A DNA stretch of 64,000 bases, from assembly GCF_030684315.1 (NCBI RefSeq), contig NC_081379.1, positions 43,543,404 through 43,607,403 of the forward strand, given 5' to 3'. The position numbers and the translations under genes were made by a program. The DNA is from Stegostoma tigrinum (lineage: Eukaryota). The notes beneath the pieces are model-generated. The model had not been told where the DNA came from. It worked only from the letters and a program-made list of their open reading frames with translations, and did not search any database. How positions within the stretch are numbered: the stretch's first letter is position 1; the number at the start of each line of letters is the position of its first letter. Positions 13,490 to 61,217 of this stretch are shown piece by piece.

Positions 13490-13622
13490 TGCTCTCTGAT
13501 GAAGGGTCTAGGCCTGAAACGTCAACTTTTGTGCTCCTGAGATGCTGCTTGGCCTGCTGTGTTCATCCAGCTTCACACTTTATTATCCCGGATTCTCCAG
13601 CATCTGCAGTTCCCATTATCAC
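13490..13622 (+). mobile_element. Penelope-like element 3' terminal fragment with hammerhead motif
   Basis: CTGATGA(13496)-agggtctaggcct-GAAACGTC then the family tail ...CAGTTCCCATTATC; flanked by ATAAAGAAAGAA(T/C)AGG at 13459-13474 and 13623-13638. Confidence 0.85.
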
Positions 13623-22900: not shown

Positions 22901-25562
22901 CATCAGTGGTGGAGGGACTAAATATTTAGGAGGGCAGGTGAAGTGCTAATCAATAGGGTTGCTTTGTCTTTGATTATGTTGAGTTTCCTGAGTGTAACTT
23001 GAGCAGCACTCATTCTGCTGTGTGGGTCTATTCCATCACACTTCAAACTTCAGCCTTACAGATGGTGGCAAACTTTGATCAATGAGGAGGTGAACATTTG
23101 ATCTGCAGTTGTTATGACAATATTTACATGGTAAGCCCAGTTAAGCTTCTGCTCAATTGCAACACCTAATGGGTTGATAGTGGGGAATACAAGAATGGAT
23201 ATAATGCTTAACATTAAGGGGAAATGATTGGATTCTCTCCTATTGGTGATGGTCACTGGTGGAAATTACTTTGGGAAAATGTTATTTACTGCTTATCTAT
23301 AGAAGCTTCAATATTGTCCAGAACTTGCTACACATGGTCAAGGGCCGGTTCACTATCTTCCCAGGACTAAATATCGCACTTGGTGATGTAATTGCTACTT
23401 TGCTAGCATAGTTTAGTAACCCAGAGACGAAAATTAATACTCAGGGGACAAGGATTAAAATCCTACATCCGGTGAAATTTAAATTTAATTAGTAATACTG
23501 GAATTAAAAATTAGTGTTGGAAATAGTTGCATGAAGGAAGCAAAACATCTTAAAAACTTATCTAGTTCACAAATTATGTTTAGGGGAGAAGATCTATTGC
23601 CCTTATTGGTCATTCCTACAGGCAATTCCAGAACCGGAGCAATGAGATTAACTTTAACTGCCCTCTGAAATATGGCGAAAAGCCAATCATTTGTGATCGG
23701 GTTACGAGGATCTATTGCACAGCAAACTGCTACACAAAAATTGAAAAGTAATAAAACTGAATAGACTACACAGCATTTGGCAAGGCATCCAAAACAAAAT
23801 GACATACAATCCACAACAACTCTGCAATGTCAGCCTTATAACCACTAGAGGAATTACTATATAAGTGTAAGATGTGCTTTAAAGACTGGTCCAGCAAAAG
23901 TACCACGCACCATTATTATTACTCCTGGGCCTGTCCTGTCCCAGCAGTAGGACGTATTGATAGGTATGGTGGCACAGAGGTATACATTCGAGAAGGAGAT
24001 ACTCCGGGTGTTCTAACACATTGACTGTGAACCTCATGAAGACGCATACCATCAGATCAAACATGGACAACAAATTTCCAGCTGACTACAGTGCACCATA
24101 CTCCCTTGGCTGTGGAATCAGTACGCTTACATGTTGAACAGCACTCGGAAAGAAGCAGCGAAGGTAGCAAGGCCACAGAATGTTTTCTGGCTGGCTGATT
24201 TCAAAATCCTTCAAGTGGCTTCGTAGAACCACTATTGACGAAGCTGGCCGAGTGCCAGCCTGAATCTGCGGCATATGGAAAGGAAGGTAACAGGAAGGAA
24301 AATCTACCTCACTGTGCTCTCACCAATCTACGTATCACTGATACATTTGTTCATGAAACAGCTGGTAGGAGTGATCGGCAGATGGCCATTGTGGAGACAA
24401 TATCATATTTATACACTGAGAATGTAGAGTAACGTGTTGCGTTCAGTACGCTAAACTGGATGAAAAAAAGTCACTTTAAATCAGAATTTTAATGGAGAGT
24501 GCTGCGGAAATTGCATCGAAGTGTGATGAGAAAAGTAATTACAGATCTGAGGGCTTTGATAACGGAAGGGTTGGCTGCCGTTAGTGGAAGAAAGTGCAGG
24601 TAGAAAAGACGTTTATTGAGCTTTCTGTACAACAGAATTTGAGATTCACGTTGCTAATGTCAGCACATCCTGAAATGCCCTTGGTAACCGATGGGGGGGC
24701 TGCTCACTGTTTCCATTTGCTCTCATATATTTATACATTCACGGTACGGACAAACCTGTTGGCTTTTCACTTTTGATTTTTGTTGAAGTTATTAATGGCT
24801 GCTTATGTGATCGGTGAAAATTTAATTTCTCGATATGCTGGTATAAAAATTTGCCTAAATAATGAATAACTGCCGACCTGAATTTTGCAGCCAGCGGGAG
24901 AAGTATTTGCCATTCACGTGCTTACAGCAGCACGCAGAGAACCTTTGCACGTATTTGGCTGTGCGCCCGATACAGCACGTGGAGCCTATGAGGATCTATG
25001 ATACGTTTTGAGCAGGAAAGGACATAATATCTCTTCGTTCAATCAAAGTGCCGAGTCCCTACCGAGATACGGGATGGAATTGTATCAACATTTTTTTTAG
25101 TGAAAGGGGAGACCTTCTGAGTGTAATGGGTCTTCGAAATTAATCCTGTGGAGTTAACCCAATTAAGAAGCCACCTGCAGGATCGGAGGCCATCTAAGAG
25201 TTGGATGAAAGGTCCAAAGCTTAAATGAGTGTGATGTACTTAACGGAGGGAGATGTGGTTTAAAGATAACAAGTCTCCCATTTAAGACATAATTGTCCAC
25301 AAAGAGTGTTATAAGCTATGTAATTAAATATTTCGAGGTAGAGGTAAACAGATTCTTGACTAACAAAGGAGTTAATGGTTATCTGAGAAAGGTGGGAACG
25401 TGAACTTGGGACCATAGTCAGATCAGCCATGATCTACTGAAAAATAGATTTGGCTAGAGGGCTTGACTGGTCTATCCCAGATTCTAATTTGTATGGTAAT
25501 GTGACATTATTGAAAACTTCTGTGATGATTTATTTCTACACAGCTAGAAAAGATTATAAAGA

Positions 25563-26094
25563 CCCTGCAGCCATATGGTATCAATGTGGACTTCACCAGT
25601 TTCAAAATCTCCCCTTCCCCTACTGCATCCCTAAACCAGCCCAATTCGTCCCCTCCCCCCACTGCACCACACAACCAGCCCAGCTCTTCCCCCCCACCCA
25701 CTGCATCCCAAAACCAGTCCAACCTGTCTCTGCCTCCCTAACCGGTTCTTCCTCTCACCCATCCCTTCCTCCCACCCCAAGCCGCACCCCCAGCTACCTA
25801 CTAACCTCATCCCACCTCCTTGACCTGTCCGTCTTCCCTGGACCGACCTATCCCCTCCCTACCTCCCCACCTACACTCTCTCCACCTATCTTCTTTACTC
25901 TCCATCTTCGGTCCGCCTCCCCCTCTCTCCCTATTTATTCCAGTTCCCTCTCCCCATCCCCCTCTCTGATGAAGGGTCTAGGCCCGAAACGTCAGCTTTT
26001 GTGCTCCTGAGATGCTGCTTGGCCTGCTGTGTTCATCCAGCCTCACATTTTATTATCTTGGAATTCTCCAGCATCTGCAGTTCCCATTATCTCT
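25563..26094 (+). mobile_element. Penelope-like element, 5'-truncated (GIY-YIG C-terminus, pyrimidine-rich 3' region, hammerhead, tail)
   Basis: TLQPYGINVDFTSF coding remnant; hammerhead core at 25966-25993; TSD TAGAAAAGATTAT at 25545-25557 and 26095-26107. Confidence 0.9.
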
Positions 26095-37872: not shown

Positions 37873-39892
37873 CTGTTTAAATTAGGTTCATTTGAGTTAA
37901 GGGACTGCGTTTTTTAAAGCAGGAGATTCCTTTCAAGATAATCCAATTTAAATTATGTCAACCATGGAATATAATAATTGGTTCACTTAGTTTTGCGCAC
38001 ATTTCAATGTAATATTTAATCCGAGAAGGACTGAATATGAGAGACCGATTTGATTTCGGTCCGACGATACAAAATGTTGGAATGTTACAATGGGTCTGAC
38101 CAAGTTGACAGAGAATATATATCTGTTCTATTTTGTATGGCATTCCTTGAAAAACATAAAGAACACGTTTGTATCGCTGCTGATGACACTTCATAAAGCT
38201 GCTATGGCTCCACCTGGAGATAGGTAGGGGCCGGCAATTGTTAGAAACAGTAATGATAATATGACAACATGAACATATGTTAAAGTTGTTGTGGTCTGCT
38301 AACGTGAAGAAATTGTGATCAGTTTTAGTCCAAATGGTACGCTCAACTGTTGCTAATGTAAAGCAAATAAGTAATAGGCAGCTCTCATCTCCTCTTGATA
38401 TTCAAAGACATTGTTACCGCATTACAGCCCCGCTATCGATACATCATGGGTTATCATTTACCAGAAATAAAACTGTTCTAACCATGTACTTGAAATGGCT
38501 ACAAGAACAGGGCAGTTACTAGGAAAGCTGCGACCAATAACCGCGCTTCCTGATTCCCCCACGTCTGGTCGGCCATTCAAACACAGCTTCAACAGCACTC
38601 TCCAAACCCGACATCATCCCAAACGAAACAGTCCACCTGACTGGCACACCATCCACCAGTTTAAACATTATACCGTATACAAGATGCACTGCAGCAATCT
38701 ACCGAGGCTCTGACAGTTGCACCTTCCAAACCCGAAAGCTCTACCGCCTGTAAGGGTGTGAACAGCAGATGTATGGGGAGACCACCAGTTGCAAGTTCTC
38801 CAGGGTATACACCATCCTGTGCTGGAACTATATCGCTATTAATTCACTACGACTGTTTTTAACTTGAGGTACGCCATCCTCTTTTACACCAGCTCTCTGC
38901 TTCCCGCCCCACCCCCTCCATCCGTACACGCATACTTTGAAAGAATGGGTGGGTAAGTAGACATCTTGTCACAGAAACACCAACAGAAAAATGCAAATAG
39001 GCAGCCCTCCCATTAGCAGCTGTTTCGCTCTGCCGCCAAGTCCAAAATCTCACCAATGCGCACCTGTGTTGCTTGAATACGTGATTTATCTATCTAGCCA
39101 GGATTACCTCGAAAAGATATTGCGCGAGGCTAGGTCTATTATGTCAGTCAATTAAATATTCCCAATTCCACTAATGCGGTTCAGAGTGTGATTTGCATTA
39201 GGTCTTCTCTGATAACTGACGTCAAACTAACCAAAAACTGAGCTCAGATTCCAACAGCAGAAAGAACAGGAAATTTCGGTCAGTACTGTCTATTCTCAAT
39301 GCACTTGACGATCTGACAACGTCAGTACTTACAGTGCAATAATAAAATGTGATCATGCTCCTGACCTCATGCTCACCCCTAAGTTCATTTTAACAAGATT
39401 GTGCACTGGTTCGGAGTTTTACCAGATTTTGTTGACCACAACTGATACACCTGAATGCGTCGATTTAATTACAGTCCCGCATTTGCTTCTTCAGGGAAGT
39501 ATTCGCGCATTATTTGTGCGTCGTTTTGAGAATTCACAGTTTTCCATTAGGTGCACCTCACTTAACCAATACGCAACAAACGAAGAGTTTCCTGGGTCCT
39601 TCGATTACGTCCTATGCGCTCAATTTAAATCAACATTCGGACTGAACTTCAGTCGTAGTTCGAAGCCGCCAGATTCAATGCAACAGTGATCACAGCGGAG
39701 AAAACCAAGAAAATCGAGAATGCAAAACATGGAAGCTTAAATTTACTAGATCTGAACAAGTGTCACTGGACCTCTCTACAGATGCTGCCAGATTTGCCGA
39801 GTTTCTCCAGTATATTCGGTTTAAATTTCAGATCTCCAGCATCCGCCGTTCATTCTTTTATTTAAGGCTAACGTTACCACCCATTTTTAGCT

Positions 39893-40281
39893 TGAGGCCA
39901 TTTTCGTTAGAGAGAAGAAGGTTAAGAGACAACTTAATAGAGACATACAAGATGATCAGAGGATTAGATAGGGTGGACAGTGAGAACCTTTCTCCTCGGA
40001 TGGTGATGGCTAGCACAAAGGGACATAGCTTTAAATTGAGGGGTGATAGATATAGGACAGATGTCAGGGATATGTTCTTTACTCAGAGAGTAGTGAGGGC
40101 GTGGAATGCCCTGCCTGCAACAGTAGTAGACTCGCCACGTTTAAGGGCATTTACATGGTCATTGGATAAACATATGGATGATAACGGAACAGTGTAGGTT
40201 AAGTGGGCTTGAGATTGGTTTCACAGGTCGGCGCAACATTGGGGGCCGAAGGGCCTGTACTGCGCTGTAATGTTCTATGTT
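39893..40281 (+). mobile_element. CR1 LINE 3' fragment (same family as 2581-6363)
   Basis: [26 protein letters not shown]...WNALPATVV, then the 3' UTR ending TGTTCTATGTT. Confidence 0.9.
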
Positions 40282-40821
40282 TCCGATGCCCTTCGTGTTC
40301 TGAAGGGCTAGTTTCTACGGGGTTACCTTTCTCGCCTCACCAATCAATTGGTGAGGGTCCATTCCTTGTGTTCCCCGACGAGACGGCGGAACGGAAGTGT
40401 CCTAAGTATTTCACTAAAATTAACAAGCAATTGCAGATTGTGGGGATGTCAAACAAAACAGAAATTCCTGGAGAAACTCAACAGTCTGGCAGCATCTACT
40501 GAGAGAAAGCAGAGTTAACATCAAGCTGTGATGTAGAGTGATCCGGTTCGAAATGGCAGCTCTGCTTTCACTCCAAAGATAATGTCAAAACTGTAGAGTT
40601 TCTCGAGCAATTTCTGGTTGTGGACATTTTCTCGTGGTTGCGGTAAAGCAAGCTCAACACGAACAAACCGTAGAATCTCTGAGCAGAAAACCTCATAGCC
40701 CTGCAAGTCTCAGTCCTTAACCAGTTAACAGGGCAGCTCTAGATCATTTGGACTAAATCTATATTCCATTGTGAGCAGGATGTTATAATTGTTGCAGAAT
40801 AGAAGGTAGACATGAATAGTA

Positions 40822-41080
40822 GGATAGTAGGAACTACAGATGCTGGAGACTGAGATAACAAGGTGTAGATAACAAAGTGTGAAGCTGGATGAACACAGCA
40901 GGCCAAGCAGCATCTCAGGAGCCCAAAAGCTGACGTTTCCGGCCTAGACCCTTCATCAGAGAGGGGGATGGGGAGAGGATTCTGGAATAAATAGGGAGAG
41001 AGGGGGAGGCGGACTGAAGATGGAGAAGAGAAGAGCTGGGTGAACACAAAAGGCCAAGCAGCATCAGAGGAGCAGGTAGA
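40822..41080 (-). mobile_element. Composite Penelope-like terminal fragments in the J-C intron
   Basis: Family tail and hammerhead core (reverse complement at 40932-40959). Confidence 0.8.
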
Positions 41081-41146
41081 CATGTATAATACGTTACTCA
41101 ACGAAATCAAGTTTTGAACTCTTGTGCGGAAGGGGGTTTTACTCAC

Positions 41147-41662
41147 TGCCAATACTGAGCGTGGTGCCTGTGCCGAAGAAGTAAATATTCGTTTCCATAT
41201 GGCACACTCCGCGACGTCTCCGGATTCAACTTTGCTGATACTTAACGTTCCTGTGATTCCGGACACAGAGCCCGAAAACCGAGTCGGAACACCTGAGGGT
41301 CTGTTCGTGCTGCTGCCAGCGTAGTGATAGAGCAAATACCGAGGAGCATTTCCAGATTTCTGCTGATACCAAATATGTTGCTGCTTCCTAAGGAGTGACC
41401 AGACAGGGTGCAACTAATCTGGGCGGCCCCTCCGGGAGCAGTCGATTTTGAAAGCGGTTGATTTACCGTAATCTGCGCGCTTGAAACCGGGGAGGGGAAA
41501 AAAAAACATCAAAAATCTTACTACTGTGTACTTTGATCAATTATCGAAACTGTTGAATATCCACACAGCAGGCAATCTTCACAAGGCGGACTTTACCTAA
41601 ACATGAAAACACTCACCGGCCGCACTGAAAGAGAACACAACGGCAACACGTTTCCAGTCCGT
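41147..41662 (-). pseudogene. Ig light-chain leader plus germline-joined VJ, pseudogene (second lineage)
   Basis: Leader 41617-41662 with ATG changed to ACG (DWKRVAVVFSFSAA), donor GTGAGT; acceptor AG changed to GG. VJ 41147-41486 reads SSAQITVNQP...[49 protein letters not shown]...; 1-nt deletions, loss of YY before Cys, [11 protein letters not shown] out of frame, donor GTGAGT. Confidence 0.92.
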
Positions 41663-41797: not shown

Positions 41798-44493
41798 ATT
41801 TTTTGAAACCCAAACACAATTTCAAATCACTTCAGCGAACAGCAAATACAGGAAGGTAATAGAAAATGCAGCGGATGCGGAAATTCCAAAACTGAACCGA
41901 AAATGCTGGACACATCAGTTTAGGATATATCTGCGGAAGGAGAAACTGGATTCATATTTCATTTCGTGACCTTTCTATACCAGCTAAAATCACCGTTGTC
42001 AAAAGCCTTAATACTCTACCAGAGTGTGTTCTGTGCATGCTAAATTGTTAAATTGGATTTGAATCCATGAAACAAGCAACAATAAATGGTGCCAGAAACA
42101 GATTTAACATTTCGAGTCGAGAGACTTCTTCAGTTCCAAAGAACTTGAATCGTTATCTCTGTTTTTCGCCCAACAGATGCTTCTCCAGTACTGTTTGTTT
42201 TTATTTATGATTTCCAGTATCCGCAGTATTTTGTGTTTACATAAAAGACATAATTTAGCTGCTGAAGCGTGCACCGTTTCTTTGACACATTTACCAACAC
42301 CCCAAAGTCTCAGTGTTCTGGGTAGAGTGATGGACACCGAGTCCTCCCAGTATTAGCTCCAACCCCATAACTGGGACAATTCATCACTGGGAAGGACAAC
42401 TATGCTCAAACACAGATGCTTCCTGAACTGATATTCCCAGAATTTCCTGTGTATTCTCTGGATTTCAACATCTGCTGCATTTGGTTTTGTATCACCTTCG
42501 TTATCTATCACCTTTCTTGCATTCGCTGTTAGTTGAAAAAAATTTGAGATTGTGTTTAGGTTTCACGGACTAACTGGTTGAGTTGAAAAAGTCTATTAAA
42601 TTTAATTTTAGCTCTGAGATAGATAAATGTTGTTAAGTGACTGTATTGAGGGATACTGGCCAAAATCAGGAATATGGGGCGGGTCAACGAACTGCGGAAC
42701 AGGGTCGAGAGGCTGAATGGTCTACTCCTATTCCTATGTTCCACAGTTTTTCCTTTGGTCGGTCATGACACCAAGGCAGGTTGTGAAAAGAAATCTGGCA
42801 AGTCAGGAACAAATGGCGTTGAGCGACGGGCACCATTTTCCAATTGAATTGGAACACCCTGGTGTGGGCGTTTTGCGCAACTTGCGCTCATTCCGCTACA
42901 GGTTGAATTATAAATGAAATTCCAATAATGTCTCACCGAGCCAGGATGGTAGGAACGAATCTTTGGAATAATGAGTTAATAGGCGATAGGTCAGTCACGC
43001 AGCGGGCGGTAGTTCATGGTTTGTGGGCCCAAAAGGAGCCTGTGAACGAGTATGGAATTAAATTCTAATCATTACTGACACTGCTTTCGCTTCTTCACCA
43101 AAGCACGCGATGATTACTGTTGCCTCCCTCTTGTTTAGTTTAACATCTGTTATGCTGCTGATTAAACATTTCTTACCTTGGGGATAAACCTTTATTTAAT
43201 TTCACTCTGCAGGTTTGACAAAAACTGTGAAACTTTCCTTCAGTCTCTGACGGGATACAGCCTCTTTATTTCCATGGGAATCAGCAAGACCTGTAGAGCA
43301 TTTCCAGCATTTTCGTGTTTTTATTCTAAAGGTTAAATTCGTTGAAGCTTAGATTCAAGTTCTTTGCAAAGTTTAACATTTACTGTTTGATTGAAGATAG
43401 ATTGTTGCAAATAGTTGCAGAACTATATAAAGCGGCATCCTACTGACAGAAAATAATGTACCAACTAAAATGTACTTTATGCCGTCCGTTTTGTGAAACT
43501 GGGTGATATGTCAGGAAACAGTCTGTATTATAGGCATTCGTATTTATTGGAAGGATTTTCACTTGACAGTATGACAGAATTTTTGTATATAAAACATTTT
43601 CTGTGATTTCAGACTGTGTTTTCTACGGATTATGCGTTGGCTAAATTACTGTGTCAAAATTGGAGTTTGATTTCTTTGCCTTCTATAGTACGTCATTTAA
43701 CCTTCGCCCCAGTGCTCACAGCAGGACGATCTTCTACCTCGTCAGTAAGTGACAAGCTGGAAAATCACAGCAGGTCAGATTACATCCGAGGAGCACGGAG
43801 GTCACTATTTCGGTCGGAACGCCTTCTACAGGACGTCAGGGCCTAAACTCTCCGAAATCCCATCCCCCTACCCCACACACCAGACGCTATTATCACATGG
43901 CCTGCCATTACACACTACCTATTGTTAGTAACTAACTGTCCCATTAACAGCTATTCATCCCCCTAGCCAAAGTGTTATCGATTCCTTTGTTTATCCAACT
44001 GTTCTTTCTCTTTGTTCCTGTCGTTTACTCATATCCCATCCCCCTTCCTATCTTCTGCATATAATTCGACGTTTTTCTACCTAACATCAGTTCTGAGGAA
44101 GGGTCACCGGACTAATATTTTTCTTCACAGTTGCTGCCAGACCTGCTGGGTTTTCCCAAAAACTTCTGTTTTTGTTGTCCATGAATACATGGGCCTGACC
44201 TTGAACGCTTCCGCTTCGATTTATTGGTTCAAAAAAAACCTCAGACTTAACGACAAGGTATACACCCTTCTCTCGGCGGCCGTCCTTAAGTATGCATAGA
44301 TCGTGACAAAGTTGTTTGGACCCGATTCAACGCTGGGGCTTCAGCGATTTATACATCAATAGCTTCATTCAAGTGAAAAAAAAGTATCCAAGTTTGCTGA
44401 TGATACAAATGTTAATGGAAACGCAGGCTGCAAGGAGGAGGCGGACACAAACAGCCTGAAATACGTGAAGAGGCATTGACTGAATCCGAAATG

Positions 44494-45615
44494 ATGTTAA
44501 AGTTCAATATGAATCGTTGAGCAGCTTCGGCCCATGATACTCGACCATGTCGGAATCCGCCGCCACCAATGTCTCAATTGTATCAGAGATAATGGGAACT
44601 GCAGATGCTGGAGATTCCAAGATAATAAAATGTGAGGCTGGACGAACACAGCAGGCCAAGCAGCATCTCAGGAGCACAAAAGCTGACGTTTCGGGCCTAG
44701 ACCCTTCATCAGAGAGGGGGATGGAACTGGAATAAATAGGGAGAGAGGGGGAGGCGGACCGAAGATGGAGAGTAAAGAAGATAGGTGGAGAGAGTGTAGG
44801 TGGGGAGGTAGGGAGGGGATAGGTCAGTCCAGGGAAGACGGACAGGTCAAGGAGGTGGGATGTGGTTAGTAGGTAGCGGGGGGTGCGGCTTGGGGTGGGA
44901 GGAAGGGATGGGTGAGAGGAAGAACCGGTTAGGGAGGCAGAGACAGGTTGGACTGGTTTTGGGATGCAGTGGGTGGGGGGGAAGAGCTGGGCTGGTTGTG
45001 TGGTGCAGTGGGGGGAGGGGACGAACTGGGCTGGTTGAGGGATGCAGTTGGGGAAGGGGAGATTTTGAATCTGGTGAAGTCCACATTGATACCATATGGC
45101 TGCAGGGTTCCCAGGCGGAATATGAGTTGCTGTTCCTGCAACCTTCGGGTGGCATCATTGTGGCAGTGCAGGAGGCCCATGATGGACATGTCATCAAGAG
45201 AATGGGAGGGGGAGTGGAAATGGTTTGCGACTGGGAGGTGCAGTTGTTTTTCATCAAGAGAATGGGAGGTTGGTTAATTGAATGACATTTCTCCTTCGCC
45301 GCCGGCCATCAGCCTTCTTCAGTGTCTTTCTTCCTTCAATCACTTTGCAGAAGTCATTCTTCAAGTGCTTATTCTTTGATGTAAGGGGCTGTTTGTGCCT
45401 GTAGATCTGGTGAGCTTCTCCACTGAATGATGAGTTCAATTTATTTATAGGTTCTATTGACAACAGGTCATCTCCAATCTGGATATATCCAAACACGTTC
45501 ATGACAGTCAATATGAACCGTTGAGCAGCTTCGGCCCCATGATACTCGACCATGTCCGAATCCGCCACCGTGAATGTCTCCACTGTATATTCATTGGTTA
45601 ATGTTAAAGTTCAAT
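44494..45615 (-). pseudogene. ADAMTS17: ADAMTS17-derived processed retrocopy with circularly permuted exons (probable circRNA-derived pseudogene), interrupted by a PLE
   Basis: Minus strand: [36 protein letters not shown]|[28 protein letters not shown]...FCKVIEG...[11 protein letters not shown]-[PLE][18 protein letters not shown]/AEAAQRFIL. This is recognisable as the ADAMTS17 prodomain end, furin site and metalloprotease start. Perfect 15-bp TSD ATGTTAAAGTTCAAT at 44494-44508 and 45601-45615. Confidence 0.88.
44585..45269 (-). mobile_element. Young Penelope-like element inserted into the ADAMTS17 retrocopy
   Basis: Nearly identical to 50355-51028; hammerhead reverse complement at 44685-44712; about 19-nt internal duplication TCATCAAGAGAATGGGAGG at its 5' junction; no TSD, about 5 nt of target lost. 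Confidence 0.92.
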
Positions 45616-45986
45616 GTGGGCAAATGCGAAGTATCCATTTGTTAAAATAAACAGCAAAGCAGATTATTTATTACCTACATGAAAAATCGAAATATTAATG
45701 GCCTCAAAGTTTTCAGTGTTCTATCACGAAGAATACAGGACAAGTACAGCAAACAATTTGCAAAGCAAGGCGATTGGAGAGTAAGACCAAATAACTCTCT
45801 CGCTAATTGCATGCGAATAGTCTGTGGGTAAGGGAGAAGGGTGTCGGGTGATGCAGTGCATACTTTGGACTTCATACTGAAAGAAGGATATCCTTGCATT
45901 GCAGCTGCTACAGGAAAGGGTATTTTGATAACTTCTTCGAGACACAGGGTTGTCCTATGATGTGAACCTGAGTACATTACGTCCAC

Positions 45987-46192
45987 GACAACAAGGTGTG
46001 GAGCTGGATGAACACAGCAGGCCAAGCAGCATCATAGGAGCACGAAGGTTGCCGTTTATCAGAAATGATAAATGGTCTAAGCCGAAACGTCAACCTTTCT
46101 GCTCCTAAGATGCTGCTTGGCCTGCTGTGTTCATCCAGCTCCACACTTTTTATCTCGGATTCTCTAGCATCTGCAGCTCCTATTATCTCTGA
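45987..46192. mobile_element. Inverted pair of PLE termini
   Basis: Minus arm then plus arm; TSD TACATTACGTCCAC at 45973-45986 and 46193-46206. Confidence 0.85.
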
Positions 46193-50327: not shown

Positions 50328-50354
50328 GTGTAAGGAGACACAATGTGCAGACAG

Positions 50355-51602
50355 AGATAATGGGAACTGCAGATGCTGGAGATTCCAAGATAATAAAATG
50401 TGAGGCTGGATGAACACAGCAGGCCAAGCAGCATCTCAGGAGCACAAAAGCTGACGTTTCGGGCCTAGACCCTTCATCAGAGAGGGGGATGGGGGGAGGG
50501 AACTGGAATAAATAGGGAGAGAGGGGGAGGCGGACCGAAGATGGAGAGTAAAGAAGATAGGTGGAGAGGGTGTAGGTGGGGAGGCAGGGAGGGGATAGGT
50601 CAGTCCAGGGAAGACGGACAGGTCAAGGAGGTGGGATGAGGTTAGTAGGTAGCTGGGGGTGCGGCTTGGGGTGGGAGGAAGGGATGGGTGAGAGGAAGAA
50701 CCGGTTAGGGAGGCAGAGACAGGTTGGACTGGTTTTGGGATGCAGTGGGTAGAGGGGAAGAGCTGGGCTGGTTGTGTGGTGCAGTGGGGGGAGGGGATGA
50801 ACTGGGCTGGTTGAGGGATGCAGTGGGGGAAGGGGAGATTTTGAAACTGGTGAAGTCCACATTGATACCATATGGCTGCAGGGTTCCCAGGCGGAATATG
50901 AGTTGCTGTTCCTGCAACCTTCGGGTGGCATCATTGTGGCAGTGCAGGAGGCCCATGATGGACATGTCATCAAGAGAATGGGAGGGGGAGTGGAAATGGT
51001 TTGCGACTGGGAGGTGCAGTTGTTTGTTTGTCCATCATGGGCCTCCTGCACTGCCACAATGATGCCACCCGAAGGTTGCAGGAACAGCAACTCATATTCC
51101 GCCTGGGAACCCTGCAGCCATATGGTATCAATGTGGACTTCACCAGTTTCAAAATCTCCCCTTCCCCCACTGCATCCCTCAACCAGCCCAGTTCATCCCC
51201 TCCCCCCACTGCACCACACAACCAGCCCAGCTCTTCCCCTCTACCCACTGCATCCCAAAACCAGTCCAACCTGTCTCTGCCTCCCTAACCGGTTCTTCCT
51301 CTCACCCATCCCTTCCTCCCACCCCAAGCCGCACCCCCAGCTACCTACTAACCTCATCCCACCTCCTTGACCTGTCCGTCTTCCCTGGACTGACCTATCC
51401 CCTCCCTACCTCCCCACCTACACCCTCTCCACCTATCTTCTTTACTCTCCATCTTCGGTCCGCCTCCCCCTCTCTCCCTATTTATTCCAGTTCCCTCCCC
51501 CCATCCCCCTCTCTGATGAAGGGTCTAGGCCCGAAACGTCAGCTTTTGTGCTCCTGAGATGCTGCTTGGCCTGCTGTGTTCATCCAGCCTCACATTTTAT
51601 TA
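50355..51602. mobile_element. Penelope-like element with long inverted arms (574-bp inverted repeat)
   Basis: Arms 50391-50964 and 51029-51602, 64-bp spacer; TSD ACAATGTGCAGACAG at 50340-50354 and 51602-51616. Confidence 0.93.
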
Positions 51603-52115: not shown

Positions 52116-52341
52116 GATAATGGGAACTGCAGATGCTGGAGAATCCAAGATAACAAAGTGTGGAGCTGGATGAACACAGCAGGCCAAGCAGCATCTCAGG
52201 AGCACAAAAGCTGACGTTTCGGGCCTGGACCCTTCATCAGAAAAGGGGGATGATGAAGGGTCTAGGCCCGAAACGTCAGCTTTTGTGCTCCTGAGATGCT
52301 GCTTGGCCTGCTGTGTTCATCCAGCTCCACACTTTATTATC
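52116..52341. mobile_element. Inverted pair of PLE termini
   Basis: Two opposed hammerhead-bearing arms; TSD CTTTTCATT(A/G)TTCAT at 52100-52114 and 52341-52355. Confidence 0.88.
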
Positions 52342-52869
52342 TTTTCATTGTTCATGCCTGTTTCAATGCCTAGTAACCAATTTCATTGTGACCAAGCCAA
52401 TGAGCACTGATTTAGTGTTTTAAACTTCTCTGTAGCAACAAATTGACCTCGTCATTTTGGAAGTTCTAATAAACCATATCTGTTGGTTCCACTATTTTAG
52501 CACCACAAGAACTGATACTTTTAAGTAACCTGTTCTTGACCTCGTCAATAACAGGGGTCAAGTATTTTTCTTATTGCTGAAGATAGGTTAACAGGCCTGG
52601 AAATCCTTACTTCTTTCAACTTTCTTAAATATCAGGGTTATGCTTTCTACCATCAAATTCTCAGAAATTTGAAGACACAAGGAGTTTCTGGCAACCGAAA
52701 AAGTATGCATTTCTGCAGTTACCATTTTTAATCCCCAAGAGACACGTCGTCATGGATATTTTTCGCTATATTCCTCCTATTTTTGTATTTTTCAATTATG
52801 TCCTTCCGTAATCTCATCTGCTTGTTGGAAAACAACACGCTGTGCCCAATCTCTCTTCAAAATGAAACT

Positions 52870-59770: not shown

Positions 59771-61002
59771 CCACCTACATTCCTCACCCCACCCCAGCCC
59801 CCAACCGGGTAAGTACCCACTCCCAAACCGTGCCGTCGGAGACAACAAAATGAATTAAAAACCTTGATGGCTGCTCACATTTTATTAAATATAAACATTT
59901 AAACATGAACATTTAAACTTTCAACTCATAAGTATAGAATCAGTGAATTATATCATACTGAGGAGACCATTCAGCCCTTCAAGTTTCTACCGCCATGTTT
60001 GGAGTCTGTTGAAAACAGACCAGAGATTCATATACAAACCCTGTCAAAATGCCATTGTGTATGAGTGATACTATTGAACACGTCAGCAGGAGTTCTTGTG
60101 TGCAGTGAAACTGTCGTAGACTTGTAGAATCCCAACATTGCAGAAAGAGACCATTTCGCTCATCGAATCTACATCCACCTTCAGAAGAGCACCCACCCAA
60201 ACCAGACTAGAGAAGATAGTGGGGTGCTTATGTAAGAAATGAAGCAAAGAAGCACTTTTCAGTGGAAGAGTTATTATTATTCACTCTTCAACACTTTGAA
60301 GTCCATGCCAATCCCTTTTGCAGAAAAAGAAACATTAAAATGCAGTGACTATTATCGCTTAGCTTTTATAGAGAAAGCTAAGACTCAAAGGTCCAGATGT
60401 TTCTGATAGATCTCATTAACTCATGCACTTAATGCACAGAAAAAGTCACATTGCTGGAAAGATCGCATGCCTGATAATATGAATTATTAAAAATGTGTTT
60501 ATCCTTGAACAGTTTGAGAATTTACAGGAAAATGACAAAACATGTTTGAATCGTGAATAAGGAATGAGTGAGAGTAGGTAAATATGATTTTCTGGTGTTC
60601 TGTTTTATAGTTCGTATTTGCTTGATGATGAAATACATTTAACAACGATGGTTCATTTCAATGGCGGAGGCATGTAAGGATCCACATCGTTTTCCGTTTT
60701 GCACCATGTACTGGAATTGAAGTCAGGCTCTGTTTAATAACTGACTAACAAAAAAGAACTTCGCAATTGGAAAAGCCAGCTGGTGCACGCTGTTTTGTTT
60801 TGGCTGTGCAAGATAATGTCGCTATTGGACCTGGAGATTATGGCATTATTGCTCTAGGGTAACACAGGAGATTTTTGATCTATGGTATGACTCACTGATG
60901 ACATTACTTGGATTGACTGAGCTGCAGTTTACTCCATACGGATTGGATCAGCCATACGAGAATCATCCAAAGCGAACGAGCAGAAAACACAGTGAAGCGA
61001 TT

Positions 61003-61217
61003 AGAGATAATGGGAACTGCAGATGCTGGAGAATCCAAGATAATAAAGTGTGTAGCTGGATGAACACAGCAGGCCCAGCAGCATCTCAGGAGCACAAAAG
61101 CTGACGTTTCGGGCCTAGAGTCTCTGATGAAGGGTCTAGGCCAGAAACATCAGCTTTTGTGGTCCTGAGATACTGCTTGGCCTGCTGTGTTCATCCAGCT
61201 TCACACTTTGTTATCTT
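61003..61217. mobile_element. Inverted pair of PLE termini inserted at the tail of a SINE
   Basis: TSD AGTGAAGCGATTAGA at 60991-61005 and 61220-61234; hammerhead core at 61124. Confidence 0.88.

Follow-up and report, generated by a model that had tools for sequence, protein, structure and literature searches.

Pseudogenes derived from circular RNAs (circRNAs) have been described in mouse and human (Dong et al., 2016, Cell Res 26:747; PMC4897178), where the main text names circRFWD2 (exon 6-exon 2), circSATB1, circDIAP3, circPRKDC, and circCAMSAP1 as examples and gives a reversed exon-exon junction and few terminal adenosines as recognition marks. According to the same main text, the mechanism by which they form "remains mysterious", and no duplications and no multi-turn copies are reported in it (PMC4897178). 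A non-mammalian circRNA-derived pseudogene was not found in any primary report in the one literature collection searched, which is no proof of absence. Here, we describe an insert in a 64-kb stretch of the Stegostoma tigrinum genome (hereafter, the window) that, judged from its sequence, is probably a processed pseudogene of a back-spliced ADAMTS17 exon 3-4 circRNA of 324 nt, copied over ~1.3 turns. Like the mouse and human circRNA pseudogenes, the insert is intron-less, contains the exons of the circle only, has a non-colinear junction at what would be the back-splice site, and has little or no poly(A); unlike them, it is found in a cartilaginous fish and involves a different gene.

The insert contains an open frame of 111 codons (45601-45269, minus strand) that starts directly after the first copy of a direct repeat, its first L codon using the final base of that repeat. 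An exhaustive profile-free search returned 70 relatives of this frame, the best being a 286-aa protein from the cloudy catshark, Scyliorhinus torazame (P0001, GCB60201.1), and, in the electric ray Narcine, a protein labelled "ADAMTS17-like" (P0002); named relatives were also found in Polypterus (ATS17), Synaphobranchus (ADAMTS17), and a gecko (ADAMTS17). When the window is compared with P0001, residues 166-201 come first (32 of 36 identical, 89%) and residues 95-168 come second (54 of 75 identical, 72%), in agreement with the permuted minus-strand order that had been proposed in an earlier, sequence-only reading of this DNA. All spliced models have the order ..CxGL/xGYIQIG..CKVxxG..RRNAIRLTxxYTVETLVVAD.. 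followed by /VYNMFQ.. (here and below, a slash outside brackets marks a limit or cut). The start of the catalytic domain stands ahead of the end of the propeptide in the window, that is, the copy is circularly permuted. All search queries were stretches that are contiguous in the window. A homologue search with the exon-3 peptide alone gave no candidates, and one with the 111-aa frame gave exon-4 fragments only, none of them from the parent gene of this species. Pfam returned no family for the 111-aa frame, and a sequence search of the PDB aligned residues 7-35 with the beginning of the catalytic domains of ADAMTS-1 and ADAMTS-4 at E values of 0.5-1.4, which are not significant, though the match agrees with the assignment.

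At the junction itself (45494/45493), ..ACT GTC ATG AAC GTG is followed directly by TTT GGA TAT ATC CAG. The exon limits were read at the protein level and across species, using unspliced ORF fragments, spliced models, and one human paper. For the end of exon 4, ~80 proteins with the sequence QRF(I/L)LT(V/I)MNM served as the test set. In ~65 unspliced genomic ORF fragments the sequence diverges right after TVMNM, where V and one of S, G, R, or K are followed by unrelated sequence; V+(S/G/R/K) is the translation of a GTRAGY-type donor (an intron starting GTR followed by AGY, GGN, or AGR). Spliced models continue with VYNMFQ after TVMNM, and four differently spliced models diverge immediately past its final M. 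Because both the fragments and the models diverge at this point, the M codon is the last one of exon 4, whose end is in phase 0. In the human gene, residues 264-291 are lost when exon 5 is skipped, and exon 4 contains p.Q254* and p.D218fs (PMC4057248); exon 5 hence corresponds to codons 264-291 and exon 4 ends at M263 of TVMNM, again in phase 0.

The start of exon 3 was located in the same manner. In three unspliced fragments (..FVLFCGQ/VGYIQ(I/L)G and ..FNFFKLQ/TGFIQIG), a T-rich tract ending in Q (CAG) precedes xG(Y/F)IQ(I/L)G, and in one alternative gene model a different upstream exon is joined at the same residue; taken together, the fragments and the alternative model place the start of exon 3 at that codon, in phase 0. 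The intron between exons 3 and 4 is a phase 1 intron, the exon-3 fragments P0065, P0068, and P0069 ending ..CKxVAG/ and the exon-4 fragments beginning /(E)KKK. It is absent from the window, where the sequence is contiguous across 45334/45333. The last codon of exon 4 is GTG in the window and ATG in the relatives, presumably because of a substitution. The sequence-only reading had given an exon 3 start and an exon 4 end, both in phase 0, for the human gene, and the fragments, the models, and the human exon numbering (PMC4057248) all agree with this; it had also staked its claim beforehand on the junction coinciding with a donor and an acceptor, which, at the protein level and across species, it does.

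The position of the junction bears directly on the possibility that the reverse transcriptase switched templates between or within linear ADAMTS17 transcripts, its jumps falling on both exon limits by chance, or, in a variant that follows a caution in the main text of Dong et al. (2016; PMC4897178), that it read across the gap between the closely spaced ends of a structured open RNA. Retrotransposition commonly involves template switching, and the repeat that interrupts the insert (see below) has a 20-nt switch-like duplication at its own 5' end, but both sides of the junction lie on exon limits and in frame, and simple arithmetic shows that random breakpoints in the 108-codon unit would hit both limits only ~1 time in 10^4. 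In addition, we know of no linear species with a 5' end at the start of exon 3. A template switch is therefore a very improbable origin of the junction.

The layout of the insert is given in Table 1. Read on the minus strand between the two copies of a 15-bp perfect direct repeat (ATGTTAAAGTTCAAT on the plus strand; 44494-44508 and 45601-45615), the order is the 3' part of exon 4, exon 3, the 5' part of exon 4, a 691-nt high-copy repeat, and exon 4 again, so that the ADAMTS17 copy is an intron-less sequence of ~0.4 kb in which two exons are joined tail-to-head. There are exactly two copies of the 15-mer in the 64-kb window, where 0.01 matches are expected by chance and 0 of 100 shuffles gave two. 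The duplication flanks the homology exactly at both ends (15/15 bp), and the DNA on either side of the insert is unique and non-ADAMTS.

Table 1. Features of the insert (window coordinates; circle position 1 is the first base of exon 3)
Feature	Position	Strand	Evidence or remark
5' target-site duplication (insert sense)	45601..45615	-	perfect 15-mer; last 1-2 bases also fit the circle
First pass, exon 4 3' part, circle 218-324, ending ..TVMNV	45494..45600	-	89% identical to P0001 166-201
Putative back-splice junction, exon 4 last base + exon 3 first base, phase 0/phase 0	45493..45494	-	ORF fragments, spliced models, human exon 5
Exon 3, FGYIQIG..CKVIE + first base of G codon, propeptide end	45334..45493	-	72% to P0001 95-168 (with next part)
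Exon 4 5' part, circle 161-224, furin-type site	45270..45333	-	exon-4 fragments begin ..CFL/EKKK
5'-truncated high-copy repeat, later insertion, same orientation as insert	44579..45269	-	copies in window, read depth, few private substitutions
Second pass of exon 4, circle ~236-305, 1-nt deletion + 8 substitutions vs first pass	44509..44578	-	alignment to first pass
3' target-site duplication	44494..44508	-	15/15 bp; first 5 sense bases ATTGA (44508-44504) also match the circle

The sequence TTAACCAA, present at 45601-45594 and again at 45277-45270, defines a period of 324 nt. Exon 3 (45493-45334) is 160 nt and exon 4 (45333-45270 plus 45593-45494) is 164 nt, which add up to the observed period. 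In circle coordinates, the insert covers positions 218-324, then 1-224, and, after a gap of ~11 nt (225-235), 236-305; the cDNA thus extends over 412-417 nt or 1.27-1.29 turns, the upper figure counting the shared ATTGA (to circle position 310). The second pass (44583-44504) is 88.9% identical to the first 81 nt of the frame, with one 1-nt deletion, and runs directly into the second copy of the 15-mer. It should be noted that, after correction, the second pass starts at 44578/44577, because ...TCTGATACA belongs to the tail of the interrupting repeat. Between the direct repeats no sequence of the neighbouring exons (exon 2, exon 5) was seen, both ends of the insert lying inside exon 4, and there is no A-run before the 3' repeat, ..CAACGATTCAT adjoining the duplicated target ATTGAACTTTAACAT. 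Neither tblastn nor blastn found further copies of the unit in the 64-kb window. The perfect direct repeats, the lack of introns and poly(A), the 324-nt period, and a copy of more than unit length had all been claimed in the sequence-only reading, and all were borne out here; the overall layout that it gave for the insert was also retained, whereas its boundary for the second pass had to be shifted and ~11 nt of the circle turned out to be lost.

The 324-nt circle, as reconstructed from 45270-45593 (minus strand), comprises 108 codons with no stop in the ADAMTS17 frame and two in-frame ATGs. Both limits being in phase 0 and the length a multiple of three, the circle would constitute an endless reading frame. 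If the circRNA reading is true, the limits at the parent locus should read AG/TTTGGATAT.. and ..ATGAAC(A/G)TG/GT.

Exact read-derived unitigs bridge every junction of the insert: 45449-45980 runs across the putative back-splice junction, the 5' duplication, and the flank, 45222-45364 crosses the 5' boundary of the interrupting repeat, and 44125-44602 extends over the 3' boundary of the repeat, the second pass, the 3' duplication, and the flank. These spanning unitigs have a depth of 4-5, which is the single-copy level of the flanks, although the reads may come from the assembled sample. Of the sampled words, 0.87 are also present in a run from a second individual. Repeats are abundant in this region, as would suit an assembly artefact or a DNA-level rearrangement of an ordinary colinear retrocopy, but the former is at odds with the bridging unitigs, with the same proviso about the origin of the reads, and a DNA duplication would not put its breakpoint exactly at an exon end and an exon start; we consider an explanation of this type hardly credible.

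The reads also contain an extra sequence at full depth (4.2) with nine differences over 45335-45478, wholly within exon 3. The possibility that this second exon-3 sequence is an allele was rejected; because its depth is full rather than half, it more likely represents the parent exon 3 or another locus. In the reads of three related species, neither an empty site nor an orthologous copy was found, the high-copy repeat being detected only, and nothing of the flanks.

Counts of exon 3 in the reads are pertinent to another explanation, namely that the insert is a retrocopy of a linear 3-4-3-4 RNA (arising by tandem exon duplication, trans-splicing, or exon repetition) that was internally primed and truncated at both ends, since such an RNA would yield an identical junction and an identical period. 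However, the catshark (P0001) and Narcine (P0002) ADAMTS17 models are both colinear (3-4-5), and at ≥80% likeness the exon-3 look-alikes in the reads amount to just about one full-depth sequence besides the locus. Moreover, a linear template offers no reason why both ends should be inside the 3-4 unit, nor why poly(A) should be missing. A linear template of this kind is accordingly improbable, and we favor the circle.

The interrupting repeat, which splits the ADAMTS17 copy and accounts for the missing ~11 nt of the circle, belongs to a family with at least 10 copies in the 64-kb window; relative to single copy, its read depth is 10^5-10^6-fold. The tail of the repeat terminates in ..CCCATTATC and is extended variably, as far as TCTGATACA; the ORF of the repeat ends ..LIFRLGTLQPYGINVDF. 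A CUGAUGA..GAAAC core is visible at ~44716-44686, and at the 5' end of the repeat 45250-45269 is a 20-nt repeat of 45190-45209, in which the first 19 nt are exact and the last base differs. Pfam gave no match on the repeat, and Rfam no hammerhead, even at E ≤10. The nearest Atlas clusters have no common Pfam family; the nearest with any is PF01541 (GIY-YIG; 15% of members, score 0.82), which is a lead only. Of the two parts of the proposal made in the sequence-only reading, that this is a later insertion of a Penelope-like element (PLE), the timing holds up well by virtue of the much lower divergence of the repeat, but the Penelope-like identity is plausible and unproven.

With regard to timing, this copy of the repeat has three private substitutions in 670 nt (0.45%) and is 1.9% from its nearest copy, whereas the two ADAMTS17 passes differ by eight substitutions and one indel in 80 nt (~10%), and the repeat therefore inserted much later than the ADAMTS17 copy. 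Six of the eight substitutions between the passes cluster in 22 nt beside the repeat, so that an age estimate based on the passes is rough. The two passes depart from the catshark protein at different residues (F/T vs I/A), as expected for the independent decay of once-identical copies. These differences in divergence also argue against a single chimeric event, in which ADAMTS17 RNA and the RNA of the Penelope-like repeat would have been co-copied between one pair of target-site duplications. The ADAMTS17 insert and the repeat do share their orientation, and, like the ADAMTS17 insert, other copies of the repeat in the window lack a poly(A) tail and are flanked by duplications, in their case of 11-16 bp; but beyond the repeat the ADAMTS17 sequence resumes in register save for the 11-nt loss, just as it would after an insertion into a pre-existing copy. 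We therefore give little credence to a combined origin and treat the repeat as a late arrival in an older ADAMTS17 copy.

Several further features of the repeat family were observed. Within the interrupting copy, 44932-45060 consists of three tandem 39-nt units (71-73% to the reference unit) that encode a proline/serine-rich stretch. Solitary 5'-truncated copies are located at 13492-13620 and 25562-26094, with direct repeats of 12-16 and 13 bp (ATAAAGAAAGAA.., TAGAAAAGATTAT); poly(A) is lacking, and the homology begins 10-20 bases after the upstream repeat, these intervening bases being unexplained. At 50352-51602, two copies lie head-to-head, meeting at ~51025/51029, and are 98.5% identical; similar inverted pairs are found at ~52116-52343 and 61000-61217. 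Two inverted copies of the repeat tail form a hairpin at 45993-46149, with 65-nt arms that are 92% complementary and a 27-nt loop, for which plant and animal miRNA precursor models of Rfam score below threshold (MIR8643, 64.9 bits compared to a gathering threshold of 135); these scores most likely reflect the hairpin shape alone.

Two other open reading frames in the window deserve mention. A 224-aa ORF at 40739-41413 (minus strand) continues into a copy of the high-copy repeat tail, and its first 66 residues are like framework-3 of an immunoglobulin or T-cell-receptor V domain (Pfam V-set, E = 0.0013, 19.4 bits, below the cut-off of 26). The 145-aa ORF at 39760-40197 (plus strand) has no Pfam match; it carries a motif known from the C-terminal region of ORF2 proteins in fish non-LTR retrotransposons.

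How might a circular RNA have been copied into the genome at this site? A circle has no 3' end, such that internal priming is to be expected, and the lack of poly(A) is likewise consistent with a circular template. At the priming end of the insert, ATTGA (44508-44504) constitutes a 5-base microhomology between target and template (p ~0.001, calculated as (1/4)^5), and at the other end the circle and the target share just 1-2 bases. We infer that the template was a covalent circle copied by target-primed reverse transcription, and, since the copy is inherited, that the event took place in germline cells or in the early embryo. In the course of events proposed here, a staggered break would be made at a unique genomic site, and the nicked bottom strand (5'-..TCAAT-3') would pair with the exon 4 sequence AUUGA of the circle and thereby prime reverse transcription. 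The polymerase would then copy back via exon 4 and exon 3, across the back-splice junction and into the end of exon 4, pass its own start point with strand displacement, and stop after 412-417 nt, whereupon second-strand joining would leave the 15-bp target-site duplication and no poly(A). Subsequently, the copy would have decayed neutrally to ~6% divergence, until, much later, the 5'-truncated, hyper-abundant Penelope-like repeat would have split it and removed the ~11 nt.

As to the enzyme, the 11-16 bp duplications and missing tails of the Penelope-like copies resemble what is seen in the insert and point in the direction of the enzyme of that family, but this is suggestive only. The full proposal, in which a poly(A)-independent reverse transcriptase, maybe that of the Penelope-like family, started at a staggered nick, where 5 nt of annealing provided the primer, and went 1.3 turns round the circle, is a speculative one that we regard as rather unlikely in this specific form. 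If it should nevertheless be true, the insert would document, for the first time at the sequence level, that a spliceosomal circRNA was copied by rolling-circle target-primed synthesis, and would tie the formation of circRNA pseudogenes to elements thought to copy ribozyme-bearing circles.

Retrozymes and hammerhead circular RNAs are said, by Cervera and de la Pena, to be mobilised by the reverse transcriptases of Penelope-like or LTR elements. As with retrozymes, we would be dealing with a circular RNA copied to DNA, in a genome crowded with Penelope-like repeats (no poly(A), 11-16 bp duplications); unlike retrozymes, the circle lacks a ribozyme and would stem from spliceosomal back-splicing of a transcript of a host protein-coding gene. 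That the insert is linked to a Penelope-like enzyme is, at this stage, only a hypothesis. Processed pseudogenes of the LINE-1 type share with the insert the loss of introns, a target-site duplication within 7-20 bp, and truncation, but differ from it in that the insert has no poly(A), its exons are non-colinear, and priming was apparently by annealing inside the RNA. Furthermore, the nick site, 5'-GTTCAAT/GTGGGC-3' on the primer strand (sense ..GCCCAC/ATTGAAC), is unlike the TTTT/AA (TT/AAAA) of LINE-1.

The shark lineage split from that of mammals >400 million years ago. The same host gene circularises in a mammal, human circADAMTS17 being hsa_circRNA_101659 (PMC9722670), for which the primer table lists 292 beside the circADAMTS17 construct, a figure that we take as its size in nt. 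The cloning primer appears to encode part of the zinc-site region and hence other exons (PMC9722670), and human circADAMTS17 does not speak for conservation of the exon 3-4 circle.

When compared with the mouse and human cases, the shark insert has every testable defining feature of circRNA-derived processed pseudogenes, to which it adds 15-bp target-site duplications, a 5-nt priming microhomology, and a length exceeding one circumference. It is also single-copy in unique DNA, in contrast to circRFWD2, for which 33 high-confidence copies flanked by LTR elements are given in the main text of Dong et al. (PMC4897178). These observations suggest that ADAMTS17 exons 3-4 underwent back-splicing in the germline or early embryo of the shark, that circular RNAs can template target-primed reverse transcription with strand displacement, and that non-mammalian genomes may be searched for permuted retrocopies as a fossil record of circRNAs once expressed. 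Next to its mammalian counterparts, the insert preserves an unusually complete set of formation marks, and it gives a precise junction sequence to seek in shark RNA.
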